Assembly (NCBI RefSeq): GCF_020745735.1
Contig: NW_026867451.1
Coordinates: 62,001-126,000 of the forward strand
Direction of reading: 5' to 3'
Origin: Hemiscyllium ocellatum
Lineage: Eukaryota
Length of the DNA stretch: 64,000 nucleotides
The translations under genes were made by a program, and so were the position numbers. This document shows positions 20,727 through 64,000 of this stretch, piece by piece. The number at the start of each line of letters is the position of its first letter. Positions within the stretch are counted from its first letter, which is position 1. Below the pieces are notes generated by a model that saw nothing but the letters and a program-made list of their open reading frames with translations, ran no database searches and was not told the origin of the DNA.

Positions 20727-22331
20727 TTTGTGAAATTGATCTGCGTTTTCGTGCTTTCTGAATCGATGTTTTCTTTCTGGTGAGGAGATTGACTCTCTGG
20801 AATACTTTTCATTACCAATATTTGTGAAGTTCTTTTGTTTTTCATGAATCATTTCTGCATTTGTTAAACTTATATGACACATTTTTCTCTGCTTGATTGA
20901 AAACATGACATCCATTTGTAACGGTCTGAAAAACAACTTAAGGCAGAAACCCAGATGTGTGAGAAATGAAAAAAAAACGAGTTTTTAATGGATTGACTTT
21001 AAACAAAAAACTCCGTTCTAATTGTAAACGAACTGAATTTTGTTTTAAGTAGCCTCATTCAAAATAAAATTTGGGACCTAAATCTGAAACTGCAGAATTG
21101 ATCAGATTACGTAATTGAAACTAACTTAAAATTATAATGTGGTAATATTTGTCCATTCAGTAATTTTGTTTTGACCATGAGGTGATTAATCAATATATGC
21201 CTTCAACCCCACTCTACTGTGCACTGCACAAGATTGTCATGATCAGGAAGGGTGTGCAGGTTAGAAATAAATTGAACTATTGCCAGAAACGTTACAGCTT
21301 TAAGTGTTAAGTCCCCTCACAAACAAGGTTGCTATTATGACCTGTTATTTCTATTCAATTTAATCATTAGTTTGCTTGATTCTGAGCAGCTTTGTTAGAC
21401 TTCAATTTGGTTTTATTTGTGAGGTGACATCATGTTCTTGGTTCTGTTGAAAATGTTTGCAGAGCTAGTTCTGCTGCAAACATACCGTGTTGTGATCTGG
21501 TGATCGTTGATCTGTTGAGGAGGGACTGTGCTTGGGTAACATTAAATGTGTTATATTTGGGAAACCGTTTCTGGTTTCTACATTGTTTTTGCAATGTTAA
21601 CACGGTTGGTGACAGTGAACTGCTCTTTCCTCATTCAATGCAATCAGCATGCGAGTTACAATTTCATAAAGTCTATTATAAAGTGAAAGGCAAATCGCAC
21701 AGGTTTTAGAAATGAAGGGAAAACAGATACCTTCAGGTGCTATTTTTACTTAAAATAAATAATTAAGGATTAATCTAATCCATGCTTTACAATCCAAATT
21801 CGAAACTCAACTATCTAGTTCAATCACAAGGTCTGTCTTTAAGCAGTTTACAAGTCATAGAGAAATATAAATAGAATTTCAAAAGTCTAATGTTCTAATA
21901 GTTCTTGCTCTTGAGCAAAAATGCCATGACTGTGCTATAATTGATCAAGAAACACCTTTCAATTCCCCTGTACACTACATACATATTTTCTGGCTGGAAA
22001 AGATCATTGGCAAAGACCATTTGGAAATTCTGCTCAATTCTATGAAGAACAGATCAGTTTCACTGCTTTGATCAGTTTCACATATAACTTGAGTTAATTA
22101 ATTGTTATGTCCCTGATTAAACTGGATTTGCAGGATAAAAATAAAACATTAACTGAATTATTTAACCTGCACAGTGCTTTAGGTGTTCCCAATCTGTGCA
22201 TGTTAAATAAATAGTTACATTTTACAACAAAATATCAACTGAAGAGTCATTCTTCGGGAAACAACTGCTATAGTGAATTATGTGACCAACCAAATTTCGA
22301 ATTAATTAAAGTAATCCACTCATGAACTCCA

Positions 22332-22671
22332 GGGCAGCATGGTGGCTCAGTGATTGGCATTGCTGCCTCACAGCGCCAGGGTCCCAAATTTGATTCCACC
22401 CTCGGGTGACTGCCTGTGTGGAGTTTGCACATTCTCCCTGTGTCTGTGTGGGTTTCCTTCGGGCGCTGTGGTTTCCTACCACAGTCCAAAAGATGTGCAG
22501 GTCAGGTGATTGTGCAGTTTAGCACAGCCATAGTGTTCAGGGATGTCTAGGTTAGGGTGCATTAGTCAAGGACAAATATAAATTAGGGGGAATGGGTCTG
22601 GGTGGGCTACTTACTGTTCAGAGGGTCAGTGTGGAATTGTTGGGCCAAATGGCCTGTTTCCATACTGTAGG
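22332..22671 (+). mobile_element. HE1-type tRNA-derived SINE
   Basis: tRNA-like head (GGTGGCTCAGTG...GATTCC), V-SINE core GTGTGGAGTTTGCACATTCTCCC, tail GGGCCAAATGGCCTGTTTCC. Confidence 0.85.
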
Positions 22672-22932
22672 AACTCTCCTCTTAAAACCATGGGAGTACT
22701 TGCTGCAAACGCAGAAAATTCATTTTACATCGATGTGTTCAGGCGTATGCAGAGTTCACAAATTTGCAGAAGACATGAACTAGAGGATAACAGAGCACAT
22801 TGTTTATTCAAACACTGAAAATAGAGTAATATTTATTTTAATTAATATACTTGATCGATTTATTGCAATGTAGCGATCTGAAGGAATCTGCTCACATTAG
22901 TTCAGTGTGACAATCATTTAGATTAGATTTCC

Positions 22933-23210
22933 TGCAGTATGTATCAGGCCATTTGGCCCAACAAGTCCACACCGACCCTCTGAAGAGGAACCCACCCAGA
23001 CCCATTCCCCTACCCTATATTTACCCCTGACTAATGCACCTAACACTATAGACAATATAGCATGACCAGTTCACCTGACTTGCACATCTTTGGATTTTGG
23101 GAGGAAATCCACACAGACACAGGGGAGATTGTGTAAACTCCACATAGGCCGTCACCCGAGGCTGGAACCGAGCCTGGGTACCTGGATCTGTGAGGCAGCA
23201 GTGCCCACAT
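22933..23210 (-). mobile_element. HE1-type SINE, inverted relative to 22332-22671
   Basis: Reverse complement of the same head, core and tail. Confidence 0.82.
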
Positions 23211-25907
23211 TTACTTAGACATCCGTTAAAGTGGGCAACTCCAGACAGAAGCATGTTTTCAATTCATACCTTTTTCAACATTTTAGTTCATTACAAGCAG
23301 TTAACAAGAAAATAACCTTGCCCTAATTCCTTCAACAGAAATGCTTTCCACACTGGAATGCAGTATTGTTTATGCAGTGCATGCAAAATCTCCACAATTC
23401 GAGGAACGTTTTAAGAATATGTAAAAATAATTTAGAGAATAATCCATTTCCTCCAGATCTGTGCTTTAATTGGCGATATTTCCCACCTCAATAATTTTGT
23501 TAAATACAATGACTTATTAAGTTTATGAACTCAGTGGTTATTTATGTTCATTGTGAACACATTCTCGTTCACATTAATCCACTGGTTAGTTCCTCTGATG
23601 AATATTCAATTACAGTGAATATATTTGATGTGAGGAGTTGAGCAATGTATCCTCTGGGATTAAGTCTGTTGTACAGTTTGTTTCAGTGCTATCTCTGACT
23701 AACTTGTCCACGGTCCTGACCATTTATAAATTGTCCAGTTCGGATACCTGAATCTCAGACAGTTCAATTTTATCTCGCGCTTCAAAACCACTTTTATCTG
23801 CCAGAAATACAATATTTGATTAGGTGCCTCAGAATTGAGAGCCCTGACTAAGTTGTTCCAATCAGAACGAACGTTTCAGGAACAAAAGGCAGATAGCAAG
23901 AGATTTGAAATTGGTTGTTGACAACAAGAGATATTTGATTGAGCGAGGCAGAGGGAAATATGCTGCAGATTTTCTTTGTGCCTCAGTTATGCAGGAGATG
24001 TTTCGTGGCACTATGTAAAATCAGAATTTTTTTTTGCATCTTATTATTTGAAAACTTATTATCAGCAATGGTCTTATTACACTTCAAAACATTATAATCT
24101 TTTTCAAACTAAGTAGACCGTCTGGTGCAGCAACATTCACAGGGGAAAGAGGAAGGGAGTTCGAGGTTGGAATCTAGTGACAGTGAATTGATGGCAATGC
24201 AATTCCTAGTTTTATTGCTCTGTAGTTCCCATCGAGTTTGAACAATTTGGAGCAGCTGTCAAAGTATTCTTGGATAAACGTTGAAATGTTACTTTCATTG
24301 TACTAACATTCTGGAACAATCCCTGGTTGTTGGAAGGTGTTAATAACTAACATGGTTTATAAACTGTCAAAACAGGTGAGCTGTGTTCTCCGTGATAGTG
24401 TCGAGCTCATTGTGTTCAGGTCTGTTGTGATGTTGTGGTAGGGTCCCTGATTCTGTGCCAGGTGGCCTGTGTTCACTTACAACCTGTTAGAGAGGTATGT
24501 AACACCATCTCTTATCAGGTTACTTCAGTACAAGAAAGCAGATTGAGATGTTTGGGTGTTTGTTGGAATTCCACTCACAGAGGCCAGTGAAATCTATTCA
24601 ATCGCTGTCCTGACTTGTGTCTCTTAGACATTAAACAGAATTTTGGTGGTTAGCAGCTTTTTCCAGATCAATATTTGTTCACAAGCTTTTGGGCATCGCT
24701 AGATGGGGTTAATGGAGTAAGTGCTCAAAGAAATCCCAGCTTTTGACTTGCTGTTCTAACAATATCATTTATAACTAATCCCGAATGAATCATTTTCAAA
24801 GTATATTTGATGAGATTTTGCTTAGGCTGTTTTACTTTATATTAAACCAGTGCTGTAGCTGAATTTGATTGTTCAGTACTGTGGGGGTTCCGTTGAATCC
24901 AACACTTGCAGCAGATGGTGATAGCTTTTCAGTTGGTCTTCCATTGCTATCTCAGACCATCCAGTACCTCTGCTAAGAATCCTTTTTCCAACAGGAGTCA
25001 AGCCAACGTAATCACTGTTTATCTCAACAGGTGTGAGCTCTTGTGCCAAAAACATGAAAACAATTTGGTGAAGAGGGGGTCTCTGGATGGGAAAGGTTCA
25101 CCTTGCCTTCTCTCCACAGGAGCTGCTAGACCTGCTGAGTTTCTTCAGACGTTTCTGTCTTTATTTTGGTTTTCTAGCATTTAAAGTTTGTTGTTTCATT
25201 GAAAAACGTTCTGTTCGATTAAACACGTTCTTCAGAGAAAGATGCATTTGAACAAATTGCAAATGTTCAGAGATATTATTGAATTTGAGTGCCCTGATCT
25301 CGAGCTGTAGTTTCACAAGAAACTATTATGAAGTAACAACACACTGCAGAGTGCAGTGGCTGCTGTAATTGGGTGGAAGTTATTTTGATCACTCAAATAG
25401 AGAATGTCAGTGATCCCGTTCCAAATAATCAACAGAAGTTTTTTTTAAAGCATGTGTGAAACAATTAATTTATCGAAATATTTTAATAAAAAGTATTCAC
25501 GGCCAGTGCTAGCTTAATGAATGACACAATGATAGGAAGGTAGGAACAAGAGGAGGGCACTCAGCCCCTCTAGTTGTTCCCCCACTTACTTAGATCATGG
25601 TGCATCTGTGAGCTCAATCCACAGGCCTCCCTTTGGCTAAAGCTCTTTAACACCTTTGTTTAACAAGCAAAAGCTATCCCAGATTTACTGATTTGACTGC
25701 CCATAACAAAGGGAGACACCATTTCTGAAAGACATTCCTGTGAGTACTGTGACACAATGAGGCTGGGATTAATTGCTCATGAAAGTAAACTTTAAATATC
25801 TGACAATTTCCAATTGAAACATCCCAATCATCATATTTCATTAATTTAACACTATACTTCCCTGGAATCAAGAAATATAATGTGTGATTGCCTTGCTAAT
25901 AATGAGG

Positions 25908-26107
25908 AGAAAGTGAGGACTGCAGATGCTGGAGATCAGAGCTGAAAATGTGTTGCTGGAAAAGCACAGCAGGTCAGGCAGCATCAAGGAGCAGGAGAAT
26001 CGACGTTTCGGGCATGAGCCCTTCTTCAGGAAGGGCTCCTTGGATGCTGCCTGCTCCTTGGATGCTGCCTGACCTGCTGCGCTTTTCCAGCAATACATTT
26101 TCAGCAG
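25908..26107. mobile_element. Palindromic Penelope terminal-repeat insertion in the J-C intron, 15-bp TSD
   Basis: TSD TTGCTAA(T/A)AATGAGG at 25893-25907 and 26108-26122; internal 18-bp tandem duplication. Confidence 0.85.
25998..26030 (-). ncRNA. Candidate minimal hammerhead ribozyme core (also at 62866-62898)
   Basis: Minus strand reads C-CUGAAGA-A-GGGC(UCAU)GCCC-GAA-ACGU-C-GAU: intact core and GUC triplet, weak stem I. Confidence 0.5.
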
Positions 26108-26206
26108 TTGCTAAAAATGAGGGAAGCTTCATTCCTATTATATGATTAAGAAATAGCTCTGTTCATTCAGTGAAAACACAGTCAAATCACTCAAAAGGAA
26201 ACCATG

Positions 26207-26410
26207 ATTTGGAGATGCTGGTGTTGGACTGGGGTGTACAAAGTTAAAAATCACACAACCCCAGGTTATAGTCCAACAGGTTTAATTGGAAGCACACTAG
26301 CTTTTGGAGTGACGCTCCTTTATCAGGTGATAGTGGAGCGTCACTCCGAAAGCTAGTTTTCTTCCAATTAAACCTGTTGGACTATAACTTGGTGTTGTGT
26401 GATTTTTAAA
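26207..26410. mobile_element. Second-family palindromic Penelope-type insertion in the J-C intron, 14-bp TSD
   Basis: Arms 26244-26318 and 26335-26409; TSD AAAAGGAAA(C/T)CATG at 26193-26206 and 26411-26424. Confidence 0.8.
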
Positions 26411-27004
26411 AAAAGGAAATCATGTCATCTTGTGTAGACACACAAGTGCCTCAAATAATTTTCAATTCTTCTAGTGGTTGTTTGAATCTCGAGACAGGTG
26501 TGGAAGTGTCAGACTTTTTATATCGCCTTGAGAAACCAGTTGTCATCAGTCTATTTGAATTGCTGAAGTTTGTGTGGTATTAGCACATTCACAGCGCTGT
26601 TAGGAAGTGAGCCCCATGGCTGTGATTGAGGAAGAGGAAACGGGCAGGGAAATAGTTGAGAGTTAAGTTGAAGTCTGATATGGAGGAAAGCTTCACATGC
26701 ATGTGTGCCCTTATCCTCAAGGATCACAATTTTGGAATATGCTGCCGAACGGACATGTCAGCATGCAAAATGGAAGCTGAAGAAGGCATCTCGGCCTCTC
26801 TAGAAGGCTATTCCATTCATGGGATCTTCATTAATCTTGCTGCTCATCAATCTTCCCAACACACTGATAACATTGAACCTGATTGTTTACTGTTCAACAC
26901 AAGAATGGTGAATTCGTTTGGAATTCTCCACCACAGAAATTCATAGATTCAAGACTCATAGATTCTTGAAAGCGTTGTCTCAAGTACCTAGTGTGTTGAA
27001 GGTG

Positions 27005-27285
27005 TTTGGCGCACGTACCTTCATTGGTCAGAGCACTGAGTGCAGGAGTTAGGGCTTCATGTTGTAATTGTCCAAAACATTGGAATGAACTGCCAGAGGA
27101 AGCGGTAAGTGCAGAGATCGGTCCCACATTGAGAAGACATTTGAACAGCTCCAGGAACTGGATCGGTCTGGATGGATATGGGCCAAAGGCAGGCAAGTGG
27201 AATGAGTTTAATTTGGGAACTCTGGTCAGCATGGCTGGGCTGGACCAAGGGAACTGTTTCGGTGCTGTACGACTTTATGTCTCAC
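27005..27285 (+). mobile_element. CR1 LINE 3' fragment
   Basis: TGGAATGAACTGCCAGAGGAAG...GGATATGGGCCAAAGGCAGGCAAGTGG CR1 3' UTR signature. Confidence 0.65.
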
Positions 27286-30080: not shown

Positions 30081-30389
30081 AGACACCATCTCCCCCCACG
30101 CTTTATGGCCTGGTCTCCTCCTGTGAGGAGCACAGCACCGGTTCGACAATCTTTGGTTGTTTGGTGATGGACTATTCCCCAGAAGTCACCAAGGTAACCT
30201 GGAAGAAAGGTGGGGTGCTAATCACGAATGGTGGATTGAAGACTTACCCATCAGTGAGAAACAAGAAGGGAACCTACACCCTGAGCAGCCAGTTAACCCT
30301 GCCCGGGTCAGCGGTAGATTGCCCCAGCAAAATCTACTGTGAGGTTCAACACAGCGGGTCACACAAGAGCAAAGAAATGCCATGTCCAG
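30081..30389 (+). CDS. IGHM: IgM CH1 exon ([18 protein letters not shown]...[17 protein letters not shown]...[19 protein letters not shown])
   Basis: Acceptor TTGTAG| at 30080, donor G|GTACGT at 30390, 309 nt, C1-set Cys/Trp/Cys pattern plus the early Cys (SSC) usual for the light-chain bond. Confidence 0.94.
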
Positions 30390-30469
30390 GTACGTATTGT
30401 GGGAACTGAGATAAACAGAGCATCTGGCATTAATATGAATAAGGCATTATTTATAACCATTTTCACAGT

Positions 30470-33330: not shown

Positions 33331-33494
33331 TTTCACATTGTCCTGATGATCTTTCTGTGTGGATCCCAACTTCTCCAGCACTCTGCACAATTATGATTCT
33401 TGTATCCATTAATCACAAGAAACCTTGATATATGAGAACTGATTGTATTTGTTATGAAATTCATCAGATAATTTATGCGATGTGTTTCCTAAAG

Positions 33495-33806
33495 GTACAG
33501 GTCCTCTCCCACCAACTCTTCTCCTAACTGTGAGCTCCAGTGAAGAAATCGCAAGCAGCAAGTTTGCAACTGTCGTTTGTTCAATCATCGATTTCCATCC
33601 GAAGACAATCAACGTGAGTTGGTTGAAAAATGGCCAACGCTTGGATTCTGGCTTCTTCACGTCTCCCGTGTGTGAGGCGAACGGGAACTTCTCGGTGACG
33701 AGTCGGCTGATGGTCCCTTATGGTGAATGGTACAACAGCGCAGTCTATACCTGCCAGGTCACTCACGAAGAGAACATTCAAAGTAAAAACATCACCGCAC
33801 TCCAGG
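33495..33806 (+). CDS. IGHM: IgM CH2 exon ([28 protein letters not shown]...VSW...[20 protein letters not shown])
   Basis: Acceptor CCTAAAG| at 33494 (an alternative in-frame AG at 33500), donor G|GTAAGA at 33807, C1-set motifs, three N-glycosylation sequons. Confidence 0.94.
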
Positions 33807-34169
33807 GTAAGAGACACATACTGGGAGAGCTACAAATCACTCTGAACTCTGATGTGAATCAAACACACTAATTTATCAGGCGTAGTAAACAGCACGGTAC
33901 AGCTTCTCATTTCCCAGCATGTCACGTATCTCATTTCAGTTTGAATGTTACATTAGTATTGCTCATAATTCAACATTTTGGCAAGTCAGAAAAGCATGTT
34001 TCCTCTCTGTTGAAGATAGATATATAGACAGTGAGCTTTGTTAAATAGTTTGTTAAATAGTTTGTTGCCTGACCATGCTGGGAGAAGCATTCAGAGTGAT
34101 GAATCCTTGCCTGGTAGTGGCTTCAAGGATAAGTTTGGGGGTGGAGGGGGGATATTGGAGAGATATCTA

Positions 34170-34540: not shown

Positions 34541-35786
34541 ATTCTGATCCTCTATCTTATGATGTTGTGGTCTCAAAATGACGTGGTTAAAATATGCAGT
34601 GACCCTAACTTGAAAATAAATCAAAATGCATTCAATGCTTCACTCCCTGCTCAGGAATGACCTGTTGGCCTTGGACATTGTACGACATCGATTTTTATCT
34701 GGTACTGAGCTCTTTAACTTCATTTATGGGATCAGACCACAGACCAAGTGGGTATCACATTTGATGAACTGGGATAAACGTGATCTCACTGAGCCTCTTT
34801 AAGATGCTCTCTGTAAGTAGTGGATGAGGCAGGAGAATAAATTCTGGTAAGAATGCTACAATAGGGATGAGTGAACGAGGAACTCGAGACAGGCTGATTT
34901 AGCCTGGTTTGGGGTGGCGATGTTTACACAGTGGGTAGTGGATGTCTATAAAATTAGTGTACATTTCCATCACGTTTGTAGATTAATTTAAGACGCTTTT
35001 GTTTGTTTTTTTTTCTCCCCTGCTCTATGAAGAAATTAAAAAATGCAGCTTGGTAAATAAAGTGAAAGTACAGACCAGTCATGAACTAACTGAATGGAGG
35101 GAAAGACTTAAGGAGATGGGTGTCCTTCTCGATATCCAATGCTGTACTCAGTGCCTTGTTTTCAGATCTACTCCAAACTCAGCCCACGAGGAACAATGAC
35201 ATAAATCAGAGAATGACATCACACCAATAACGCAAAGTATTTTTGATCACGTTAAATATAATGAACAGAATTTCCATGGATATTCACTGCTCCTGTAGCA
35301 CTTTAGAACTCTGCAAAGAGAATAATTATTATTTCTTATAATTTGTCCAAAATTTGGGATGTGATTTGGCAGTCAGCGTGACCAGCAGCACTTGCACCTA
35401 AGGGTTATGAACATGGAAATGAACTCATTATATTCAGATTACTCTTGTCACAAGTATCAATAGATGGTCTTAAGTGAGAGACAAACTCTGAAAGAAAGGT
35501 AATTCCATGGGTTACATCATGGTATCTTCGATGATTTTACTTTTTTCACAGCTTTCACTTGTTACAAAGCCAGTGTTCTTTGGGAATAATTACACAGGGT
35601 ATGTCATAGGTAATCACAAATGCTTTCACAAATCAAAATACATCAACAATAGTAAGCATTGTTTCAGCAATGGTTGGAGTTGCCATTTTGAAGGTGGTGT
35701 CTTCACCCTGTGAAGAAGTAATCTGAAGATTGGGTGTTTGTATCATAAAGGGGCATTTTTCATTGACTTTGATTTTTGTTTCATAG

Positions 35787-36095
35787 AAGATACCGAGTGC
35801 CACCCTAACACCGTTAAAATCCTCCCACCGCCAGTCGAACAAGTCTTACTGGAGGCGACGGTGACGTTAACCTGCGTTGTGTCCAATTTTCCATCTGGAG
35901 TCAGCGTGACCTGGAAGCAAGAAAAGAAGCTTCTGAAAACCGAGATTGCTGACCAGCCTGGACAGAATCCCGACAGCGTGATCAGCAAATTAGACATTTC
36001 TACTGAAGCCTGGCTGAGTGGTGTTACTTTTGAATGTGTGGTGTACCATCAGAATCTACCGACTCCGCTGAGAGACTCCATCCACAAGGAGAAAG
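35787..36095 (+). CDS. IGHM: IgM CH3 exon ([30 protein letters not shown]...VTW...[22 protein letters not shown])
   Basis: Acceptor TTCATAG| at 35786, donor G|GTGAG at 36096, 309 nt, C1-set motifs. Confidence 0.95.
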
Positions 36096-36542
36096 GTGAG
36101 CGGTGAGATTAAAACACACAGCATCCCATGTGGAATCCAGATCCAGTTACATCAATGGCAGGCTTTGATTGGTAATGAACAAACACCGTTGGGAGCATTT
36201 ATGATGCATCTGAAGGCAGGATAACTAAGTAGCTGATAAAGAAAAAGATGGACCAAAGGATATTGTATTCTGATTAAGTCAGATAAGGTGGGAAGAAGCC
36301 TGGGTTGTGATGTCACCATCAGCAATGACAGTTGGACAGAATGCCCTTGTTGTGGGCTGGAAACATGGAGGCAACTTTCACATTAAACTTTACTTTTTTT
36401 ACTGAACAGAATGTGTACTCTTTTAGAAAACGAAAGTGAATAAATCCCAAATTAAAAATGGCATATTTTAATATTGAGTGAAATTGTGATATTGGTTCAG
36501 GATGTTTTTGATTGATTTATATTTGTCTCAAATATTCTGCAG

Positions 36543-36934
36543 TGATTAATCCGCTGGAGCCATCAGTGTCGGTCCTCCTGCCACCAACAGAAGAAATCTC
36601 CGCTCAGAGGTTTCTCTCCCTCACCTGTTTAGTGAGAGGTTTCTCCCCCCGAGAGATCTTCGTCAAGTGGACAAACAATGACAAGCAGGTGAATCCCAGT
36701 AACTACAAGAACACCGAGGTGATGGCAGAGAGTGACAACACTTCCTTCTTCATGTACAGCCTGTTATCCATTACAGCGGAGGAGTGGGCCAGCGGTGCTT
36801 CTTACTCCTGTGTGGTGGGACATGAAGCGATTCCATTGAAGATCATCAACAGAACAGTCGATAAATCCAGCGGTAAACCGAGTTTCGTAAACATTTCACT
36901 TGCACTGATGGACACTGTTAATTCATGTCAATAA
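36543..36934 (+). CDS. IGHM: IgM CH4 exon with secretory tailpiece (...[23 protein letters not shown]|[20 protein letters not shown])
   Basis: Acceptor TCTGCAG| at 36542; internal donor AGCG|GTAAAC at 36873 for the membrane form; tailpiece with NIS sequon and penultimate Cys; stop TAA at 36932-36934. Confidence 0.97.
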
Positions 36935-51484: not shown

Positions 51485-51984
51485 NNNNNNNNNNNNNNNN
51501 NNNNNNNNNNNNNNNNNNNNNNNNNNNNNNNNNNNNNNNNNNNNNNNNNNNNNNNNNNNNNNNNNNNNNNNNNNNNNNNNNNNNNNNNNNNNNNNNNNNN
51601 NNNNNNNNNNNNNNNNNNNNNNNNNNNNNNNNNNNNNNNNNNNNNNNNNNNNNNNNNNNNNNNNNNNNNNNNNNNNNNNNNNNNNNNNNNNNNNNNNNNN
51701 NNNNNNNNNNNNNNNNNNNNNNNNNNNNNNNNNNNNNNNNNNNNNNNNNNNNNNNNNNNNNNNNNNNNNNNNNNNNNNNNNNNNNNNNNNNNNNNNNNNN
51801 NNNNNNNNNNNNNNNNNNNNNNNNNNNNNNNNNNNNNNNNNNNNNNNNNNNNNNNNNNNNNNNNNNNNNNNNNNNNNNNNNNNNNNNNNNNNNNNNNNNN
51901 NNNNNNNNNNNNNNNNNNNNNNNNNNNNNNNNNNNNNNNNNNNNNNNNNNNNNNNNNNNNNNNNNNNNNNNNNNNNNNNNNNNN
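51485..51984. other. Assembly gap (500 N) immediately before the duplicated cluster
   Basis: Run of N of round length. Confidence 0.99.
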
Positions 51985-54900
51985 TTCTTGCATACAATTT
52001 TAGTGAATACAAAAACAATTATGTTTTTCCTCTATATAGTTTCCATTCTTGTTTACTCAGCTCTTGGCTGAAACAATTACACACTGGTGTGAGTTCATTT
52101 ACTTTGTATAAGTAATTATAATTGCAGAAGTAACACTACTTTACCTATATCCCACACACTGTTCCCTGATGTCTGGTTGCATTTGTGAGCAACAGGTGAA
52201 CCTGCGAACCAGATTCAGGATAGTACTGCAGGTATTTCAGCAGATACTGTGTAAACGGAATTCTCCCATAAATCAGCAATGACATGAACATTTATTTTTT
52301 ATGGTGTTTGAAACCAAATAAAATTGAACAATATGCTGGGACAAGTTCCTTTCATTTCTTTGAACTAGTATCAAGGGACACTCTCTGTGGGCCTGGGGTG
52401 GCAGGAGGATCTTTAACAGCAGAATGTGAGGGAACAAAGTTACCGTTGGAAATCCAGATAGACTGGAACTTGTTTCACTGGAGGGTGAGAGTTCGGGGGT
52501 GGTGACCTCATATAAGTTTATAAAGCCATGAGTGGAAAGGTGAATGGCTCTAATTTACATGATTCATCCTGGAAATGTACGAAGCTTTCGTTTCAAAAAT
52601 ATCACATATCAATAAACTCCACCTGATCCTCTGGCGAGCGATGTGGAAATTAATGGTCTAATTAATGGTGCCAGACGATGCCTGGGGCAACATCCCTTTA
52701 TTCAACTAAAGTCAGCAATATACATTAACAATGTGAAAGGCGCAAACTGTACTTTTACCCAGAGCAGCCAGTTTCATCTGCAGTCAGACACAACTTCAAA
52801 ATTCAGACCATTGCACAGAGATAGACGAGCCCTCACAACACTGGTAATGATTTTGTTTGATAAAAGAATTCATCGTAGACTTCCTCAGAGCAACTCATGT
52901 CAACAAACTTGTTTTTTATTGTGTGTGGGGTAACACACGAAATGTCACTTTAATACGATTGATGTGAACCACTTGCATTTCAGAAGTTATTTGAAAACGT
53001 CCATCACATTAGATACGCAAATAAATTTTACAAATCATTGATCAAAGGGGACAATCTTTTTTGGACTCAAGGAAGATCCATAGTAATATTTTGTAAATGT
53101 TTGGAGCTGGGATTGTTTTCAATTTTTGACCCAGACATTGTTGTATTTTCCCTATGGTGGGGGATTTCAACAATAGGGAACATGTTTTACAATGAGAGGA
53201 GAAAAATTTTTAAAACGATATCAGAGGCAGCTTTTTATACAGAGAATGGTTTGTGTGTGGGATGATCTGGTGGTGGATACTTACAACCTATAGAAGACAT
53301 TTGGATAAGTAAATGAATATCAAATGTTTGGAAGGATATGGGCCAAGTACACACAGGTGGGATTAGTTTAGTTTGGGATTATGACTGGCATGGACTGGTT
53401 GGACTGAAGTGTCTGTTTCCATGCTGTCTCACTCCATGACTCTATGACTATTTATCAATTTTTCTCAATATTAAACAGTGCTGTAGTGATCCTCGAATGA
53501 ACTGTTGATGTTTAGGTTGTGTCTGAGACTCTGCGAATATTTCCTTCAATGAGAGGAGTGACTAGTTCTCCAAGTTTCACAACTGAAAAATAAACTTTTC
53601 TCCAGTATTGTTGCTGAGTAGATGTGTTCCTGCAGAGGCAGTGGTTATGGTCTGCAGTTTGCTTTCCACCAACTGGTCAACAGTGAGACAAAATATCTTT
53701 GATCCCCTGCAGAAACTCCACCTGCTTCCAGTAAATGAACCTGGGAACTCAAGGACCTTTTCTGCAGTCAGCTTAATTGCTGCCAACTATTGTATCTGGC
53801 CGATTAAAGGGAAAATGAATCAACTAAAGTAAAATCCTACCAAACAAACTATATTTTCCCATGTACTCACAATGGATACATTTCACTTGGCATTTCTTCT
53901 TTAAAAAGGAAAGTCACTGAATACAGCATTCACTGTATGACTATCAGAAACAGGACATTGAATGCAGTGATGTTCTGGTTAGTTCAGCCTGTTTATTGAG
54001 TATCTTTAAAGCTCCTGAATATGAAGTTAATGGATCCAAAATCCCACATTGCAGTAACATTTGTTATCATCTCAAAGTAAATTAACAAACTTGAATTGGT
54101 TCAAACTCACATCACTTGGTACACCATTCTCTGATTCATTTATCTCATTAAAACTGAGTGGGCCCTTTATACATGGTTAACACTGGTGTCGTGTAACAGC
54201 GAATTTCTGCTTATTTTTATGAGTTAACTGCCCCTGTCAGAGCTATCAGTGAGCAGAGAAATGGACTGTTTATAACCTACATTCGTGGTAATGATTATTG
54301 TAATACTCTCTAATTTAACCAAACACTCCTGATGTACCCAGACAGTTACCTGCAATGGTTTAGATGTTGAGGATTTTATTAAAAGAAACGTATGGACTGT
54401 CCTGTTCTAGTTCATTAGATGCTCTTTCAAAAGTTTCCCTAGGTGTTATGTATCACTGCCAACTCACTTTTTGTTTCTCAGGCACACAGCTTTCCTTTAC
54501 TATGCATTTTAAAAAATTTGAAAAAAAGATGCAAGGAGAGACATTCTGCAATGTAAGGAGGTGCTTCTAATCTCCGGGTCCAAACTGTTTAGTGACACAC
54601 TCACATTCTGAACATAATCACTTTAGTCCTGCTCCATATTAGGTTGCCTAAATGGAATTTAGAAACGCAGATTAGAAATGGGATGTTATTTTGTAAAGTG
54701 AGAGAGACGTTGAGTGACAGCAAAAATAAAGTCACTCATTTTGTTGGTTAATAATATGATTGAAGTTCTTTTTAGCTTTATCTGCTTGTGGTGGAATGTA
54801 GAATTAAAGGGAGTTAACTTCTAATTGAATATTCTGAATATAATCACTTTGGACACGCTCTGTATTCAGTTGCCTAAATTGAATTTTGAAATGTTTAGTA

Positions 54901-55227
54901 TGAATTACATGTTATTTTGTAGTGGGACAGAGACTGGCAGTGTCCTGGGGAAATAAAACTCAATTGTTTTACTAGCTAGTAATATGTTTGAACTTTGATT
55001 TTAGTTTTATCTGTTTGTGAATGAATGTAGAAATAAAGGGAGGTAACTTCCGAATGGATTTATTTTAAAACAAAATACTTGCAACTATCATGTGAAATAG
55101 ACCTGAAGGTACTCAATTTTACTTCCACCATTTAAAAAAACACTCCCAAAGAAGCTATTCAGCAAAATAAATATCCCAAGATGTGTATATATCCATGTTT
55201 AAGCGTAACCTGGTAAATACATGAGCC

Positions 55228-55333
55228 CATGTGTTGGGGCTGTGCAAGCTGAGACCAGGATCCAGTCTCAGCCTCCAGCAGGAAACCAACAGGCGGAAGC
55301 TGTGAGCCTGCCCTTTCCGATGGCCATATAAAT
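55228..55333 (+). promoter_or_regulatory. VH promoter region, cluster 2 (TATA-like at 55326-55333)
   Basis: Same sequence as the cluster 1 promoter at offset 37215. Confidence 0.6.
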
Positions 55334-55419
55334 CCTAGGCACTGGACCGTAATTCAACACTCCGGGATCGGCTTTGTTTAGAAAGATCTTGACAGAACCG
55401 CTTCCCAGAAGTTATCAGA

Positions 55420-55468
55420 ATGATTGTGTCGACAATTTTTCTCAGTTTATTACTGACTTTCTTATCAT
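55420..55468 (+). CDS. IGHV: VH leader exon, cluster 2
   Basis: Identical to the cluster 1 leader; donor GTGAGT at 55469; 107-nt intron. Confidence 0.93.
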
Positions 55469-55575
55469 GTGAGTGTTTTTTTTTGTTTAAGTCTGTCTTT
55501 GTTGCTGTCTCAATGTTAGTCTACCTCAGGAATGTAAAAGTAATGCTCATGGTTTATTTCTTGTCTTTTTTAAAG

Positions 55576-55880
55576 GTGTCCAGTCGGAGGTTGTTTTGAC
55601 CCAGCCAGAGGCAGAGACTGGCCATCCCGGAAGCAGCCTGACACTGACCTGTAAAACCAGCGGGTTCGATCTCAGCAGCTATAGCATGTACTGGGTCCGC
55701 CAGGTTCCCGGCCAGGGTCTGGAGTGGCTGGTTCGCTACTATAGTTCATCCAGCAATAACTATGCACCAGCGATTCAGGGTCGATTTACTGCGTCCAAAG
55801 ACAATTCAAACAACATTTTCTCGTTGAAAATGACTAACCTGAAGATCGAAGACACCGCCATCTATTACTGTGCAAGACGC
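55576..55880 (+). CDS. IGHV: VH exon, cluster 2 (…[41 protein letters not shown]…DTAIYYCAR)
   Basis: Open frame, all V-set motifs present, 9 nt differences from the cluster 1 VH. Confidence 0.98.
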
Positions 55881-55919
55881 CACAGCGAGAGGAACCAGGG
55901 CTGGACCCGTTCAAAAACA
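55881..55919 (+). other. VH 3' RSS, 23-bp spacer, cluster 2 (CACAGCG-23-TCAAAAACA)
   Basis: Identical to cluster 1, so V is unrearranged. Confidence 0.93.
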
Positions 55920-56267
55920 GCTCGGGGGAACATTTTGTCAATTCCATCATAAACTGATGGTCAGTTTGAGTTTTAAATGCAATTATACCAACTGCGATCT
56001 GAAGCAGACCTCAGGCTGCCTCTTACAAAGCTATCAAAGAGGAAATGTACCATTTAAACTAGGAAACTGGTGACACAATGGGACAATGTTTTAGGCATGT
56101 CATATGTACTGCTAACACTTCCATCAATTAAATGCTGGGACAAAATATATCTGACAGCTCAGGAAATCACTGCTAATTGTTATGTCAACTATGGCATTCA
56201 TTCTAAACATGATCAGTACTAAATGGCTCTTTCAAATGAAAATTGAGACCTAGAGTAAAGAACAGAG

Positions 56268-56295
56268 AATGAGTGTACTGGTCTACATCATTGTG
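56268..56295 (-). other. 5' 12-RSS of the fused D (D1-derived, degenerate nonamer)
   Basis: AATGAGTGT-12-CATTGTG, identical to 19051-19078. Confidence 0.7.
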
Positions 56296-56320
56296 ATACT
56301 ACAGTGGGTAGCTGGAGTGA
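56296..56320 (+). CDS. Fused D1-D2 segment (ATACTACAGTGGGT+AGCTGGAGTGA), pre-joined diversity segment
   Basis: Full D1 joined to D2 lacking its first 4 nt; the 373 bp equivalent to 19093-19465 are absent; one extra A inside the D2 part. Confidence 0.93.
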
Positions 56321-56348
56321 CACTGCAATTATGATCAATACAAAAACC
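56321..56348 (+). other. 3' 12-RSS of the fused D (D2-derived, CACTGCA-12-ACAAAAACC)
   Basis: Identical to 19476-19503. Confidence 0.92.
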
Positions 56349-56675
56349 TATTCAGCCTCCATTGTTTGAAACTAGTCAGTGATTACTTCTACAAACCATC
56401 TTAACTTGCAGTTCGGTATTAGTTCTGTGGGGTTTTATGCCAGTATCACTATTTAATTTGTAAAAGTGTTGGGTAATTATTGATACACCAGTTGGGGATT
56501 TTGAGAATCAGCTGATGTGTTACTCTGTGAAGTATAAAACAGTATTAAAATTTATCAAGAATGATCAAAATTCACTCGCGCAATTATGTGATGAAGATTT
56601 ATCGTGACTTTATTTTGCCTGTGGTTCTGAAAATTTAAAATGATGGTAGATTTTTGATTTGTTTTATGCAGAGCT

Positions 56676-56714
56676 AGTTATTGTGTGATCCAGTCCAGAG
56701 AATGTAACACTGTG
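56676..56714 (-). other. JH 5' 23-RSS, cluster 2
   Basis: AGTTATTGT-23-CACTGTG, identical to cluster 1, so J is unrearranged. Confidence 0.92.
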
Positions 56715-56762
56715 ACTATCTTGATTACTGGGGCCAAGGGACCATGGTGACAGTGACTTCAG
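56715..56762 (+). CDS. IGHJ: JH segment, cluster 2 (YLDYWGQGTMVTVTS)
   Basis: WGQG motif; donor G|GTAAGA at 56763. Confidence 0.97.
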
Positions 56763-57288
56763 GTAAGAACTTTGAACATTCTTAGTGACTTTTTAAAAAC
56801 TTTCTATTCATGTGACTAATTTCTGAATTAAATGAAACTCAGATTCTGTGCTGAGTTTGGTTTGGTTTGGATTGATTTTTGTTCAGACTGATTATAGACT
56901 TCAGTTAAGGCTCAGCAAATAGTTAAAATGGTGATGATGGAGTCATTTGCTCAGTGTATCTCTTTTTTTTGATCAGATGGACGTTCTATGTGGCTGGGTT
57001 ACTTGAAACACCTAATGTCTCTTAATCAGTCAGCTATAAATAATGTTTAATGTCAGTGACACCCTGACTGTGAGTTTTATGATCAACAACAAATGCTACG
57101 AATTCAAAGATGTTCAAGATATTACCAAACATGACTAAAATATGCTAAAATATCATTATTCATTTCTTGAATATATGTTCTTACCATGATTATATTTTCT
57201 CATTTATTTTGTTAATTTTGTTGATGACAAGCAGGTTAGAAACTGTCATCAAAGTTTCTTGCGGTGCTATATTGCATTCTGTTGATTA

Positions 57289-57573
57289 GATTCGGAGTTT
57301 GTTTTACTTGATTCTGTTGAATTGAGTTGATTGGATTTTGGCTTTGTTTTAGTTGATTCGGGTTGAACTGTGTTGATTGGATTCTGACTTTGTTTTTACT
57401 TGGTTTTGTTGAATTGTGTTGATTGACTTTTGAAATGGTTTTATTTGATTCTGTTGAATTGAATTGGTTGGATTCTGATTATGTTTCATTCAAATCTGTT
57501 GTTTTAAGTTGATTGGATTCTGATTTTATTTTCCTTGATTCTGTTGAATTGAGTTGATTGGATTCTTATTCAG
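57289..57573 (+). repeat. Same 45-bp tandem repeat in cluster 2
   Basis: Copy of 20442-20726. Confidence 0.88.
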
Positions 57574-59169
57574 TTTGTGAAATTGATCTGCGTTTTCATA
57601 CTTTCTGAATCGATGTTTTCTTTCTGGTGAGGAGATTGACTCTCTGGAATACTTTTCATTACCAATATTTGTGAAGTTCTTTTGTTTTTGATGAATCATT
57701 TCTGCATTTGTTAAACTTATATGACACATTTTTCTCTGCTTGATTGAAAACATGACATCCATTGGTAACGGTCTGAAAAACAACTTAAGGCAGAAACCCA
57801 GATGTGTGAGAAATGAAAAAAAAAGAGTTTTTAATGGATTGACTTTAAACAAAAAACTCAGTTCTAATTGTAAACGAACTGAATTTTGTTTTAAGTAGCC
57901 TCATTCAAAATAAAATTTGGGACCTAAATCTGAAACTGCAGAATTGATCAGATTACGTAATTGAAACTAACTTAAAATTATAATGTGGTAATATTTGTCC
58001 ATTCAGTAATTTTGTTTTGACCATGAGGTGATTAATCAATGTATGCCTTCAACCCCACTCTACTGTGCACTGCACAAGATTGTCATGATCAGGAAGGGTG
58101 TGCAGGTTAGAAATAAATTGAACTATTGCCAGAAACGTTACAGCTTTAAGTGTTAAGTCCCCTCACAAACAAGGTTGCTATTATGACCTGTTATTTCTAT
58201 TCAATTTAATCATTAGTTTGCTTGATTCTGAGCAGCTTTGTTAGACTTCAATTTGGTTTTATTTGTGAGGTGACATCATGTTCTTGGTTCTGTTGAAAAT
58301 GTTTGCAGAGCTAGTTCTGCTGCAAACATACCGTGTTGTGATCTGGTGATCGTTGATCTGTTGAGGAGGGACTGCGCATTAAATGTGTTATATTTGGGAA
58401 ACCGTTTCTGGTTTCTACATTGTTTTTGCAATGTTAACACGGTTGGTGACAGTGAACTGCTCTTTCCTCATTCAATGCAATCAGCATGCGAGTTAAAATT
58501 TCATAAAGTCTATTATAAAGTGAAAGGCAAATCGCACAGGTTTTAGAAATGAAGGGAAAACAGATACCTTCAGGTGCTATTTTTACTTAAAATAAATAAT
58601 TAAGGATTAATCTAATCCATGCTTTACAATCCAAATTCGAAACTCAACTATCTAGTTCAATCACAAGGTCTGTCTTTAAGCAGTTTACAAGTCATAGAGA
58701 AATATAAATAGAATTTCAAAAGTCTAATGTTCTAATTGTTCTTGCTCTCGAGCAAAAATGCCATGACTGTGCTATAATTGATCAAGAAACACCTTTCAAT
58801 TCCCCTGTACACTACATACATATGTTTCTGGCTGGAAAAGATCATTGGCAAAGACCATTTGGAAATTCTGCTCAATTCTATGAAGAACAGATCAGTTTCA
58901 CTGCTTTGATCAGTTTCACATATAACTTGAGTTAATTAATTGTTATGTCCCTGATTAAACTGGATTTGCAGGATAAAAATAAAACATTAACTGAATTATT
59001 TAACCTGCACAGTGCTTTAGGTGTTCCCAATCTGTGCATTTTAAATAAATAGTTACATTTTACAACAAAATATCAACTGAAGAGTCATTCTTCAGGAAAC
59101 AACTGCTATAGTGAATTATGTGACCAACCAAATTTCGAATTAATTAAAGTAATCCACTCATGAACTCCA

Positions 59170-59509
59170 GGGCAGCATGGTGGCTCAGTGATTGGCATTG
59201 CTGCCTCACAGCGCCAGGGTCCCAAATTTGATTCCACCCTCGGGTGACTGCCTGTGTGGAGTTTGCACATTCTCCCTGTGTCTGTGTGGGTTTCCTTCGG
59301 GCGCTGTGGTTTCCTACCACAGTCCAAAAGATGTGCAGGTCAGGTGATTGTGCAGTTTAGCACAGCCATAGTGTTCAGGGATGTCTAGGTTAGGGTGCAT
59401 TAGTCAAGGACAAATATAAATTAGGGGGAATGGGTCTGGGTGGGCTACTTACTGTTCAGAGGGTCAGTGTGGAATTGTTGGGCCAAATGGCCTGTTTCCA
59501 TACTGTAGG
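59170..59509 (+). mobile_element. HE1-type SINE (cluster 2 copy of 22332-22671)
   Basis: Duplicate sequence. Confidence 0.85.
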
Positions 59510-59770
59510 AACTCTCCTCTTAAAACCATGGGAGTACTTGCTGCAAACGCAGAAAATTCATTTTACATCGATGTGTTCAGGCGTATGCAGAGTTCACAAA
59601 TTTGCAGAAGACATGAACTAGAGGATAACAGAGCACATTGTTTATTCAAACACTGAAAATAGAGTAATATTTATTTTAATTAATATACTTGATCGATTTA
59701 TTGCAATGTAGCGATCTGAAGGAATCTGCTCACATTAGTTCAGTGTGACAATCATTTAGATTAGATTTCC

Positions 59771-60059
59771 TGCAGTATGTATCAGGCCATTTGGCCCAAC
59801 AAGTCCACACCGACCCTCTGAAGAGGAACCCACCCAGACCCATTCCCCTACCCTATATTTACCCCTGACTAATGCACCTAACACTATAGACAATATAGCA
59901 TGACCAGTTCACCTGACTTGCACATCTTTGGATTTTGGGAGGAAATCCACACAGACACAGGGGAGATTGTGTAAACTCCACATAGGCCGTCACCCGAGGC
60001 TGGAACCGAGGCTGGAACCGAGCCTGGGTACCTGGATCTGTGAGGCAGCAGTGCCCACA
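59771..60059 (-). mobile_element. HE1-type SINE (cluster 2 copy of 22933-23210, with a 12-nt tandem duplication)
   Basis: Duplicate sequence; GAGGCTGGAACC occurs twice. Confidence 0.82.
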
Positions 60060-62775
60060 TTTACTTAGACATCCGTTAAAGTGGGCAACTCCAGACAGAA
60101 GCATGTTTTCAATTCATACCTTTTTCAACATTTTAGTTCATTACAAGCAGTTAACAAGAAAATAACCTTGCCCTAATTCCTTCAACAGAAATGCTTTCCA
60201 CACTGGAATGCAGTATTGTTTATGCAGTGCATGCAAAATCTCCACAATTCGAGGAACGTTTTAAGAATATGTAAAAATAATTTAGAGAATAATCCATTTC
60301 CTCCAGATCTGTGCTTTAATTGGCGATATTTCCCACCTCAATAATTTTGTTAAATACAATGACTTATTAAGTTTATGAACTCAGTGGTTATTTATGTTCA
60401 TTGTGAACACATTCTCGTTCACATTAATCCACTGGTTAGTTCCTCTGATGAATATTCAATTACAGTGAATATATTTGACGTGAGGAGTTGAGCAATGTAT
60501 CCTCTGGGATTAAGTCTGTTGTACAGTTTGTTTCAGTGCTATCTCTGACTAACTTGTCCACGGTCCTGACCATTTATAAATTGTCCAGTTCGGATACCTG
60601 AATCTCAGACAGTTCAATTTTATCTCGCGCTTCAAAACCACTTTTATCTGCCAGAAATACAATATTTGATTAGGTGCCTCAGAATTGAGAGCCCTGACTA
60701 AGTTGTTCCAATCAGAACGAACGTTTCAGGAACAAAAGGCAGATAGCAAGAGATTTGAAATTGGTTGTTGACAACAAGAGATATTTGATTGAGCGAGGCA
60801 GAGGGAAATATGCTGCAGATTTTCTTTGTGCCTCAGTTATGCAGGAGATGTTTCGTGGCACTATGTAAAATCAGAATTTTTTTTTGCATCTTATTATTTG
60901 AAAACTTATTATCAGCTTTTAAAGTTACTGGCAATGGTCTTATTACACTTCAGAACATTATAATCTTTTTCAAACTAAGTAGACCGTCTGGTGCAGCAAC
61001 ATTCACAGGGGAAAGAGGAAGGGAGTTCGAGGTTGGAATCTAGTGACAGTGAATTGATGGCAATGCAATTCCTAGTTTTATTGCTCTGTAGTTCCCATCG
61101 AGTTTGAACAATTTGGAGCAGCTGTCAAAGTATTCTTGGATAAATGTTGAAATGTTACTTTCATTGTACTAACATTCTGGAACAATCCCTGGTTGTTGGA
61201 AGGTGTTAATAACTAACATGGTTTATAAACTGTCAAAACAGGTGAGCTGTGTTCTCCGTGATAGTGTCGAGCTCATTGTGTTCAGGTCTGTTGTGATGTT
61301 GTGGTAGGGTCCCTGATTCTGTGCCAGGTAGCCTGTGTTCACTTACAACCTGTTAGAGAGGTATGTAACACCATCTCTTATCAGGTTACTTCAGTACAAG
61401 AAAGCAGATTGAGATGTTTGGGTGTTTGTTGGAATTCCACTCACAGAGGCCAGTGAAATCTATTCAATCGCTGTCCTGACTTGTGTCTCTTAGACATTAA
61501 ACAGAATTTTGGTGGTTAGCAGCTTTTTCCAGATCAATATTTGTTCACAAGCTTTTGGGCATCGCTAGATGGGGTTAATGGAGAAAGTGCTCAAAGAAAT
61601 CCCAGCTTTTGACTTGCTGTTCTAACAATATCATTTATAACTAATCCCGAATGAATCATTTTCAAAGTATATTTGATGAGATTTTGCTTAGGCTGTTTTA
61701 CTTTATATTAAACCAGTGCTGTAGCTGAATTTGATTGTTCAGTACTGTGGGGGTTTCCGTTGAATCCAACACTTGCAGCAGATGGTGATAGCTTTTCAGT
61801 TGGTCTTCCATTGCTATCTCAGACCATCCAGTACCTCTGCTAAGAATCCTTTTTCCAACAGGAGTCAAGCCAACGGAATCACTGTTTATCTCAACGGGTG
61901 TGAGCTCTTGTGCCAAAAACATGAAAACAATTTGGTGAAGAGGGGGTCTCTGGATGGGAAAGGTTCACCTTGCCTTCTCTCCACAGGAGCTGCTAGACCT
62001 GCTGAGTTTCTTCAGACGTTTCTGTCTTTATTTTGGTTTTCTAGCATTTAAAGTTTGTTGTTTCATTGAAAAACGTTCTGTTCGATTAAACACGTTCTTC
62101 AGAGAAAGGATGCATTTGAACAAATTGCAAATGTTCAGAGATATTATTGAATTTGAGTGCCCTGATCTCGAGCTGTAGTTTCACAAGAAACTATTATGAA
62201 GTAACAACACACTGCAGAGTGCAGTGGCTGCTGTAATTGGGTGGAAGTTATTTTGATCACTCAAATAGAGAATGTCAGTGATCCCGTTCCAAATAATCAA
62301 CAGAAGTTTTTTTTAAAGCATGTGTGAAACAATTAATTTATCGAAATATTTTAATAAAAAGTATTCACGGCCAGTGCTAGCTTAATGAATGACACAATGT
62401 TAGGAAGGTAGGAACAAGAGGAGGGCACTCAGCCCCTCTAGTTGTTCCCCCACTTACTTAGATCATGGTGCATCTGTGAGCTCAATCCACAGGTCTCCCT
62501 TTGGCTAAAGCTCTTTAACACCTTTGTTTAACAAGCAAAAGCTATCCCAGATTTACTGATTTGACTGCCCATAACAAAGGGAGACACCATTTCTGAAAGA
62601 CATTCCTGTGAGTACTGTGACACAATGAGGCTGGGATTAATTGCTCATGAAAGTAAACTTTAAATATCTGACAATTTCCAATTGAAACATCCCAATCATC
62701 ATATTTCATTAATTTAACACTATACTTCCCTGGAATCAAGAAATATAATGTGTGATTGCCTTGCTAAAAATGAGG

Positions 62776-62985
62776 AGAAAGTGAGGACTGCAGATGCTGG
62801 AGATCAGAGCTGAAAATGTGTTGCTGGAAAAGCACAGCAGGTCAGGCAGCATCAAGGAGCAGGAGAATCGACGTTTCGGGCATGAGCCCTTCTTCAGGAA
62901 GGGCTCCTTGGATGCTGCCTGCTCCTTGGATGCTGCCTGATGCTGCCTGACTTGCTGCGCTTTTCCAGCAATACATTTTCAGCAG
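62776..62985. mobile_element. Cluster 2 copy of the hairpin insertion at 25908-26107
   Basis: Perfect TSD TTGCTAAAAATGAGG at 62761-62775 and 62986-63000; one extra 10-nt internal repeat. Confidence 0.85.
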
Positions 62986-63084
62986 TTGCTAAAAATGAGG
63001 GAAGCTTCATTCCTATTATATGATTAAGAAATAGCTCTGTTCATTCAGTGAAAACACAGTCAAATCACTCAAAAGGAAACCATG

Positions 63085-63288
63085 ATTTGGAGATGCTGGT
63101 GTTGGACTGGGGTGTACAAAGTTAAAAATCACACAACCCCAGGTTATAGTCCAACAGGTTTAATTGGAAGCACACTAGCTTTTGGAGTGACGCTCCTTTA
63201 TCAGGTGATAGTGGAGCGTCACTCCGAAAGCTAGTTTTCTTCCAATTAAACCTGTTGGACTATAACTTGGTGTTGTGTGATTTTTAAA
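63085..63288. mobile_element. Cluster 2 copy of the hairpin insertion at 26207-26410
   Basis: TSD at 63071-63084 and 63289-63302. Confidence 0.8.
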
Positions 63289-64000
63289 AAAAGGAAATCA
63301 TGTCATCTTGTGTAGACACACAAGTGCCTCAAATAATTTTCAATTCTTCTAGTGGTTGTTTGAATCTCGAGACAGGTGTGGAAGTGTCAGACTTTTTATA
63401 TCGCCTTGAGAAACAAGTTGTCATCAGTCTATTTGAATTGCTGAAGTTTGTGTGGTATTAGCACATTCACAGCGCTGTTAGGAAGTGAGCCCCATGGCTG
63501 TGATTGAGGAAGAGGAAACGGGCAGGGAAATAGTTGAGAGTTAAGTTGAAGTCTGATATGGAGGAAAGCTTCACATGCATGTGTGCCCTTATCCTCAAGG
63601 ATCACAATTTTGGAATATGCTGCCGAACGGACATGTCAGCATGCAAAATGGAAGCTGAAGAAGGCATCTCGGCCTCTCTAGAAGGCTATTCCATTCATGG
63701 GATCATCATTAATCTTGCTGCTCATCAATCTTCCCAACACACTGATAACATTGGACCTGATTGTTTACTGTTCAACACAAGAATGGTGAATTCGTTTGGA
63801 ATTCTCCACCACAGAAATTCATAGATTCAAGACTCATAGATTCTTGAAAGCGTTGTCTCAAGTACCTAGTGTGTTGAAGGTGTTTGGCGCACGTACCTTC
63901 ATTGGTCAGAGCACTGAGTGCAGGAGTTAGGGCTTCATGTTGTAATTGTCCAAAACATTGGAATGAACTGCCAGAGGAAGCGGTAAGTGCAGAGATCGGT

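Follow-up and report, generated by a model that had tools for sequence, protein, structure and literature searches.

Layout of two IgM clusters in the window

How did two D segments that lie apart in one shark IgM heavy-chain cluster come to be fused in a nearly identical cluster of the same genomic stretch? Germline-joined antibody genes of sharks are the main natural evidence that RAG can act on the germ line and remodel antigen-receptor loci. The window analyzed here, the whole 64,000-nucleotide stretch of Hemiscyllium ocellatum DNA, holds two shark IgM heavy-chain clusters that are ~99% identical across 12 kb. Copy 1 has the layout V-D1-D2-J followed by four C exons, and copy 2 has the layout V-DD-J, with D1 and D2 already fused in the assembled genome. 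In a protein search the V region was 87% identical to a Chiloscyllium punctatum VH (best hit) and 74% identical to a horned-shark VH, which places the animal among the galeomorph sharks, near the bamboo sharks. Copy 1 is composed of the following elements.

18205-18253, + strand: leader exon, identical to the copy 2 leader
18359-18663, + strand: VH exon, V-set match
18664-18702, + strand: VH 23-spacer RSS, CACAGCG-23-TCAAAAACA
19051-19078, + strand: D1 5' 12-spacer RSS
19079-19092, + strand: D1, ATACTACAGTGGGT, identical to D1 of the bamboo-shark cluster L001
19093-19130, + strand: D1 3' RSS, CACAGTG, 22-nt spacer, ACAATAACC
19093-19465, + strand: the 373 bp missing from copy 2, i.e. D1 3' 22-spacer RSS, spacer DNA, D2 5' 12-spacer RSS and the first 4 nt of D2
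19434-19461, + strand: D2 5' 12-spacer RSS
19462-19475, + strand: D2, ATATAGCTGGGTGA, 369 bp from D1, with 12-spacer RSSs on both sides
19476-19503, + strand: D2 3' 12-spacer RSS
19830-19868, + strand: JH 23-spacer RSS
19869-19916, + strand: JH coding segment
30161-36934, + strand: C-mu CH1-CH4 and secretory tail, in ORF pieces 30161-30409, 33482-33871, 35738-36106 and 36512-36934

All four C-mu ORF pieces gave C1-set hits, and a secretory tail of mu type closes the last one. For copy 2 the C exons fall past the end of the window, and its remaining elements are listed below.

51485-51984, no strand: 500-N gap directly upstream of copy 2, whose homology to copy 1 runs from 51985
55420-55468, + strand: leader exon, identical to the copy 1 leader, then a GTGAGT donor
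55576-55880, + strand: VH exon, intact; spliced translation open, Pfam V-set E=1.3e-19
55881-55919, + strand: VH 23-spacer RSS, CACAGCG-23-TCAAAAACA, identical to copy 1
56268-56295, + strand: 12-spacer RSS on the 5' side of the fused D, with nonamer AATGAGTGT and heptamer CATTGTG around the spacer; same sequence as the D1 5' RSS in copy 1
56296-56320, + strand: fused D1-D2 coding segment, 25 nt (D1 part 56296-56309, D2 part 56310-20, junction 56309/56310)
56321-56348, + strand: 12-spacer RSS on the 3' side of the fused D, CACTGCA-12-ACAAAAACC; same sequence as the D2 3' RSS in copy 1
56676-56714, + strand: JH 23-spacer RSS, identical to copy 1
56715-56762, + strand: JH coding segment, YLDYWGQGTMVTVTS, with a GTAAGA donor; 2 nt differ from copy 1, changing G to D

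Self-comparison of the window matched 14768-19092 to 51985-56309 at 99.2% and 19465-27122 to 56309-64000 at 98.9%. When the copies were aligned base by base (14768-27122 versus 51985-64000), we counted ~55 substitutions and ~20 small indels of 1-16 bp, and the sole large difference was a net deletion of 372 bp in copy 2 (373 bp lost, with D2 1 nt longer). Flanking the D region, the copies differ by one substitution in the V-D1 spacer and one indel in the D2-J spacer. The sequence-only reading had placed a pre-joined D at 56268-56348, an interval that spans the fused D exactly from outer nonamer to outer nonamer. Its D1 and D2 coordinates, their 369-bp distance and the facing 22- and 12-spacer RSSs were confirmed by reading copy 1, and the alignment bore out that the whole of D1 is joined to D2 minus 4 nt (or 3 nt, with a shared T) and that 373 bp are gone. 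The four RSSs that remain in copy 2 (V-RSS, D1 5' RSS, D2 3' RSS and J-RSS) are identical to those of copy 1 and intact, as had been claimed.

The leader, V ORF, J and splice sites of copy 2 are intact. In the VH exon the two copies differ only in CDR1, CDR2 and at the V end, and together with J these coding differences form multi-base patches (copy 1 positions 18465-18467, 18514-18518, 18661-18662 and 19878-19879; copy 2 equivalents 55682-84, 55731-35, 55878-79 and 56724-25). Of the three reading frames of the fused DD, 1 and 3 are open (ILQWVAGV and TTVGSWS), whereas frame 2, the YYSG frame of D1, is interrupted by stop codons. ORFs across the D1-D2 junction reach just 21 aa.

Anatomy of the D1-D2 joint

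At the joint copy 2 reads CATTGTG, ATACTACAGTGGGT-AGCTGGAGTGA, CACTGCA, with D1 complete and D2 lacking ATAT. The junction is GGGT/AGCTGG. On the D1 side the break coincides with the border between coding sequence and heptamer, and on the D2 side it lies 3-4 nt into the segment. Copy 2 has lost the D1 3' 22-spacer RSS, 312 bp of DNA between the signals, the D2 5' 12-spacer RSS and 3-4 nt of D2. With spacers of 22 nt (D1 3') and 12 nt (D2 5'), the consumed pair of RSSs fits the 12/23 rule. Direct reading of the junction revealed neither a heptamer remnant nor N nucleotides.

Three decompositions account for the junction: D1 complete and D2 minus 4 nt; D1 minus 1 nt and D2 minus 3 nt with a shared T; or D1 complete, a 1-nt P nucleotide (A) and D2 minus 5 nt. 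N nucleotides are required by none of the three (0/3). The earlier claim that the joint has no N additions agrees with this, although the form with the P nucleotide and 5 nt trimmed fits equally well. The earlier interpretation as a RAG-type coding joint was supported by endpoints at the RSS/coding borders, by the absence of any kept heptamer and by the lack of an N region. The probability that a random deletion would hit a 12/23-compatible RSS pair this precisely, each end lying no more than 7 nt from the coding side, is ~1e-6.

We find it hardly credible that the copies differ through a non-RAG deletion, by replication slippage or microhomology, or through RAG transposition that inserted an RSS-flanked fragment and so split a single D in copy 1. 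CACAGTG does form a 7-bp direct repeat, present once at each border of the lost segment (+ strand), which could suggest slippage; however, slippage between these repeats would keep one copy and none is kept, which contradicts such a deletion. The sole microhomology at the joint is 1 nt. An RSS-ended insertion is ruled out by copy 1, which carries no 3-5 bp target-site duplication (TGGGT versus ATATA), and the insertion is further contradicted by outgroup clusters that have the split form with a homologous spacer (see below). The anatomy of the endpoints thus points to RAG as the agent of the join.

Among the signals flanking the D segments, the D1 3' RSS is the only one with a perfect (7/7) heptamer; its nonamer matches 8/9 and the heptamer of its partner is CACTGTG. 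This strong D1 3' signal may explain why the D1 3'/D2 5' pair fired.

The D2 part of copy 2 is one base longer than the corresponding part of copy 1 (AGCTGGAGTGA versus AGCTGGGTGA, GGAGTGA versus GGGTGA). Related D2s are 15 nt long, and read ATATAACTGGGGTGA in the unjoined bamboo-shark cluster L006 and CTGGAGTG in the joined gene L003. Since the D2 of related species is 15 nt, the extra base in copy 2 is most likely part of the ancestral D2 sequence and not junctional, and it is the D2 of copy 1 that lacks a base, in a G run.

Comparison with IgM clusters of related species

As comparison set we used seven IgM V loci from related species (L001-L007). The closest relatives over V to J are Chiloscyllium punctatum clusters, at ~93% nucleotide identity. 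In one of them (L001, C. punctatum BEZZ01001580.1) D1 is identical to that of the window and has the same 22-spacer RSS beside it, the DNA between D1 and D2 is homologous, and D2 begins with ATATAGCTG. Another bamboo-shark cluster (L006) is a complete V-D1-D2-J and aligns to copy 1 over the entire V-to-J length. From V to J, the two copies share 98.9% identity, compared with 92-93% between either of them and L001 or L006. The window contains the 373-bp segment once, and L001 and L006 carry homologous sequence between their D1 and D2. Because both of these clusters keep split D1 and D2 with a homologous spacer, the split form is ancestral and the joined form derived, which places the loss on the copy 2 lineage after its separation from copy 1.

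The D2 of L001 showed an irregularity of its own (L001:7290-7310). Following ATATAGCTG there is a ~195-bp jump, after which the sequence resumes at the equivalent of window ~19665; the 3' half of D2 and its 12-RSS are missing, and the breakpoint has AGCTG microhomology. Either the cluster is crippled or the short-read assembly slipped.

The remaining loci of the set are joined to different degrees: four are VDD-J, one is a fully joined VDJ, and L001 and L006 are the two unjoined ones.

L002:7675-7705, L003:6455-6485, L004:6455-6485: VDD-J, brownbanded bamboo shark
L007:5845-5875: VDD-J, cloudy catshark
L005:6475-6505: fully joined VDJ, whale shark

Inside these five genes (L002-L005, L007) the D1-D2 junctions keep the G-rich D1 end and have lost 4-6 nt of the AT-rich D2 end. 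V-DD-J was found at 0/7 of the related-species IgM loci, and the D1-D2 junctions of the bamboo-shark VDD-J genes lie within the same few nt as that of copy 2.

This similarity raises the possibility that the D1-D2 join is old and descends from an ancestral V-DD-J, possibly the precursor of VDD-J, in which case either the flanks of copy 2 were gene-converted or copy 1 regained the spacer. The junction of L002, GTGGGG/AGCTGGATTGT, resembles that of copy 2, GTGGGT/AGCTGGAGTGA, the L003 gene has CTGGAGTG, and the single D2 difference between the copies sits 7 nt from the joint. Nevertheless, we consider such an old origin improbable. On either side of the joint, copy 2 groups as sister to copy 1 (98.9% identity, versus 84-93% to all bamboo-shark clusters), and conversion on both sides that stops at a 25-nt core would be unparsimonious. 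Moreover, biased trimming of the AT-rich D2 end accounts for the similar junction positions, and is preferred over shared ancestry because the two flanks are sister to copy 1. A recently made D1-D2 join is the best reading of these data.

The CDR patches were polarised with L001 and L006, and copy 2 mostly holds the outgroup state; by this comparison copy 1 is the more derived copy. Patchy gene conversion or CDR selection is a more likely source of the patches than a mutational burst in the joined copy. A joint germline episode of RAG and AID, leaving an SHM-like burst in the joined copy, was also considered, and was rejected as copy 2 is mostly in the outgroup state.

Germline or somatic origin, paralogue or allele

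The differences between the copies are spread over the full 12 kb, which makes copy 2 a separate locus or haplotype instead of a somatic product of copy 1. Being its own locus or haplotype, its consensus would show the unrearranged majority of cells unless the join was inherited. V-DD-J intermediates with one rearrangement (1R) are frequent in nurse-shark thymocytes (PMC2435157), and a junction that is a somatic lymphocyte rearrangement, or an artefact of assembly in the consensus, has to be weighed for this reason. In addition to the divergence along all 12 kb and the weight of unrearranged cells in a consensus, such somatic joins vary between cells and as a rule contain N regions, whereas the copy 2 joint is without N, and joined clusters are present in independent assemblies of related species. 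Both a somatic and an artefactual junction are thus highly improbable, and the logic of the assembly points to a germline origin of the join.

The sequence-only reading had described an unjoined, near-identical sibling 37 kb away. The near identity holds (~99% over 12 kb), but the spacing and tandem order of the copies rest on scaffolding over a 500-N gap. Alternatively, copy 2 could represent the second haplotype of cluster 1, retained as a haplotig and scaffolded beside it, in which case the same germline RAG-type join would make the animal a V-D-D-J/V-DD-J heterozygote. Several features agree with this: copy 2 is homologous to copy 1 from the very first base behind the scaffold gap, the end of the contig preceding the gap has no match in the sequence upstream of 14768, and divergence is just ~0.45% substitutions plus small indels. 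On the other hand, the 9 nt that differ between the V exons fall into three CDR patches, a pattern typical of paralogues, and the divergence of the copies may be above the heterozygosity usually reported for sharks. We therefore regard a haplotig as unlikely, and note that the join would be heritable whether copy 2 is a paralogue or an allele. As an allele it would be a polymorphism, and a germline RAG recombination would then be recent enough to segregate in a living shark population.

The window contains two runs of N, each exactly 500 bases long (6444-6943 and 51485-51984), and the contig between them is ~44.5 kb; the assembly is fragmented in this Ig region. Several 1-nt indels between the copies are found at homopolymers (15282, 15700, 17303, 20116, 20978 and 24887; G7, T8, A8, T7, A7 and G5). 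These may be real length variation or long-read consensus errors, and the assembly may be of the noisy long-read type.

A model for the D1-D2 join

Taken together, the D1-D2 segment of copy 2 is probably a heritable RAG-type coding joint. We propose that a single V(D)J recombination of RAG type took place in a cell of the germ line, or in one that precedes it, and that the product was then inherited. RAG would have cut at the D1 3' 22-spacer RSS and the D2 5' 12-spacer RSS, and the 369-bp signal-ended fragment would have been lost. The D1 end would have stayed intact or lost 1 nt, the AT-rich D2 end would have lost 3-4 nt, and the ends would have been ligated without N addition, i.e. without TdT. 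Such an event would have taken place after copy 2 parted from its 99%-identical sibling copy 1, be it a tandem paralogue or the other allele. The expected product is a one-D cluster, V(23)-(12)DD(12)-(23)J, in which two somatic joins would still be needed. Copy 2 has exactly this layout, in agreement with the earlier claim that a two-D cluster was converted into a one-D cluster.

Since the 12/23 rule is obeyed and V, J and the outer RSSs are intact, copy 2 should still be able to rearrange, with one junction fewer and with a fixed DD core. The private V and J markers of copy 2, which reads SYSM in CDR1, WLVRYY in CDR2 and YLDY in J, allow a test in the repertoire, as its transcripts should share an invariant D1-D2 core.

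Reintegration of the excised fragment was considered as well and was rejected, as the 369-bp spacer occurs just once in the window.

Comparison with known germline-joined genes

The literature bears out the background of the sequence-only reading, in which germline-joined clusters are ascribed to RAG acting in the germ line (PMC2193156, PMC4279169). For IgM, reviews list the germline-joined forms VD-J, VD-DJ and VDJ (PMC5192425, PMC4279169, PMC2193153), and the joined clusters of horned shark and skate are given as VDD-J, VD1-D2J and VDJ in the summaries of Kokubu et al. 1988 (PMC2193153, PMC5192425, PMC4279169). As in copy 2, the segments of these clusters are abutted, an RSS pair is precisely lost and germ-line RAG is held responsible. 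However, all these forms involve V or J, whereas copy 2 is joined at D1-D2 only, a one-step (1R) product with V and J untouched. A germline V-DD-J form of IgM is absent from these reviews, and outside them the configuration was met only in a study of somatic rearrangement; Kokubu et al. 1988, known here through summaries, or subscription journals could contain a germline case. A full-text literature search with the D1, D2 and junction strings returned no relevant paper.

The same configuration is known from somatic cells. In nurse-shark thymocytes and B cells V-DD-J (1R) intermediates arise with no fixed joining order (Malecek et al. 2008, PMC2435157), and these use the same RSS pair as copy 2. 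Their joints are heterogeneous from cell to cell and are sites of N regions, in contrast to the single consensus junction without N in copy 2.

For a germline join of two adjacent D segments and nothing else there is a precedent, the D1-D2 fusion of nurse-shark IgNAR type III (PMC4622739). IgNAR type III still rearranges, with one join fewer and with restricted CDR3 diversity, and by analogy the same may apply to copy 2. The two differ in that IgNAR has three D segments and IgM two, and no near-identical unjoined sibling is reported alongside IgNAR type III, whereas copy 2 has copy 1. Furthermore, IgNAR type III is fixed and expressed in neonates.

The germline joints of the nurse-shark NS4 (kappa-type) light chain offer a further parallel. 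In contrast to somatic joints they bear little mark of TdT, but they do show trimming and possible P nucleotides (Lee et al. 2000, PMC2193156), a pattern that the joint of copy 2 fits. There too joined and split versions of highly similar genes were compared, N is little or absent, no RSS remnant is left and the joined form derives from the split one. NS4 is a light-chain V-J join, whereas copy 2 is a heavy-chain D-D join. Lee et al. found heavy-chain germline joints too divergent to dissect (PMC2193156), and the pair of copy 1 and copy 2 is a heavy-chain case that is clean enough.

The D1 3'/D2 5' RSS pair has been used by a germline RAG-type reaction before. Horned-shark clusters are related by an inversion of the D1-D2 spacer, which was read as a germline hybrid joint (Lewis and Wu, PMC2193153). 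That inversion kept both RSSs, in contrast to the deletional coding joint of copy 2. Copy 2 is thus a new example of known germline joining in a configuration that is rarely described.

The value of the locus accordingly lies in a clean before/after pair and a single-step configuration, and not in a new principle. With 99% identity between the two states, a heavy-chain joint can be read base by base, and copy 2 captures a single-step joining intermediate. A D segment with 12-spacer RSSs on both sides, placed between a 23-RSS V and a 23-RSS J, is the IgH layout of bony vertebrates. One germline join turns the two-D layout of sharks into this D layout, which may hint at an evolutionary link between the two.

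Repeats near the clusters

Upstream of VH we observed an inverted repeat pair of ~590 bp with 86% identity (13130-13710 versus 15328-15922, and 52546-53140). One arm lies inside the duplicated segment, and the pair probably represents two copies of an interspersed repeat. In the J-C intron both clusters contain a 166-bp element (26244-26409 and 63122-63287) that is palindromic, with a 90% match to its own reverse complement.
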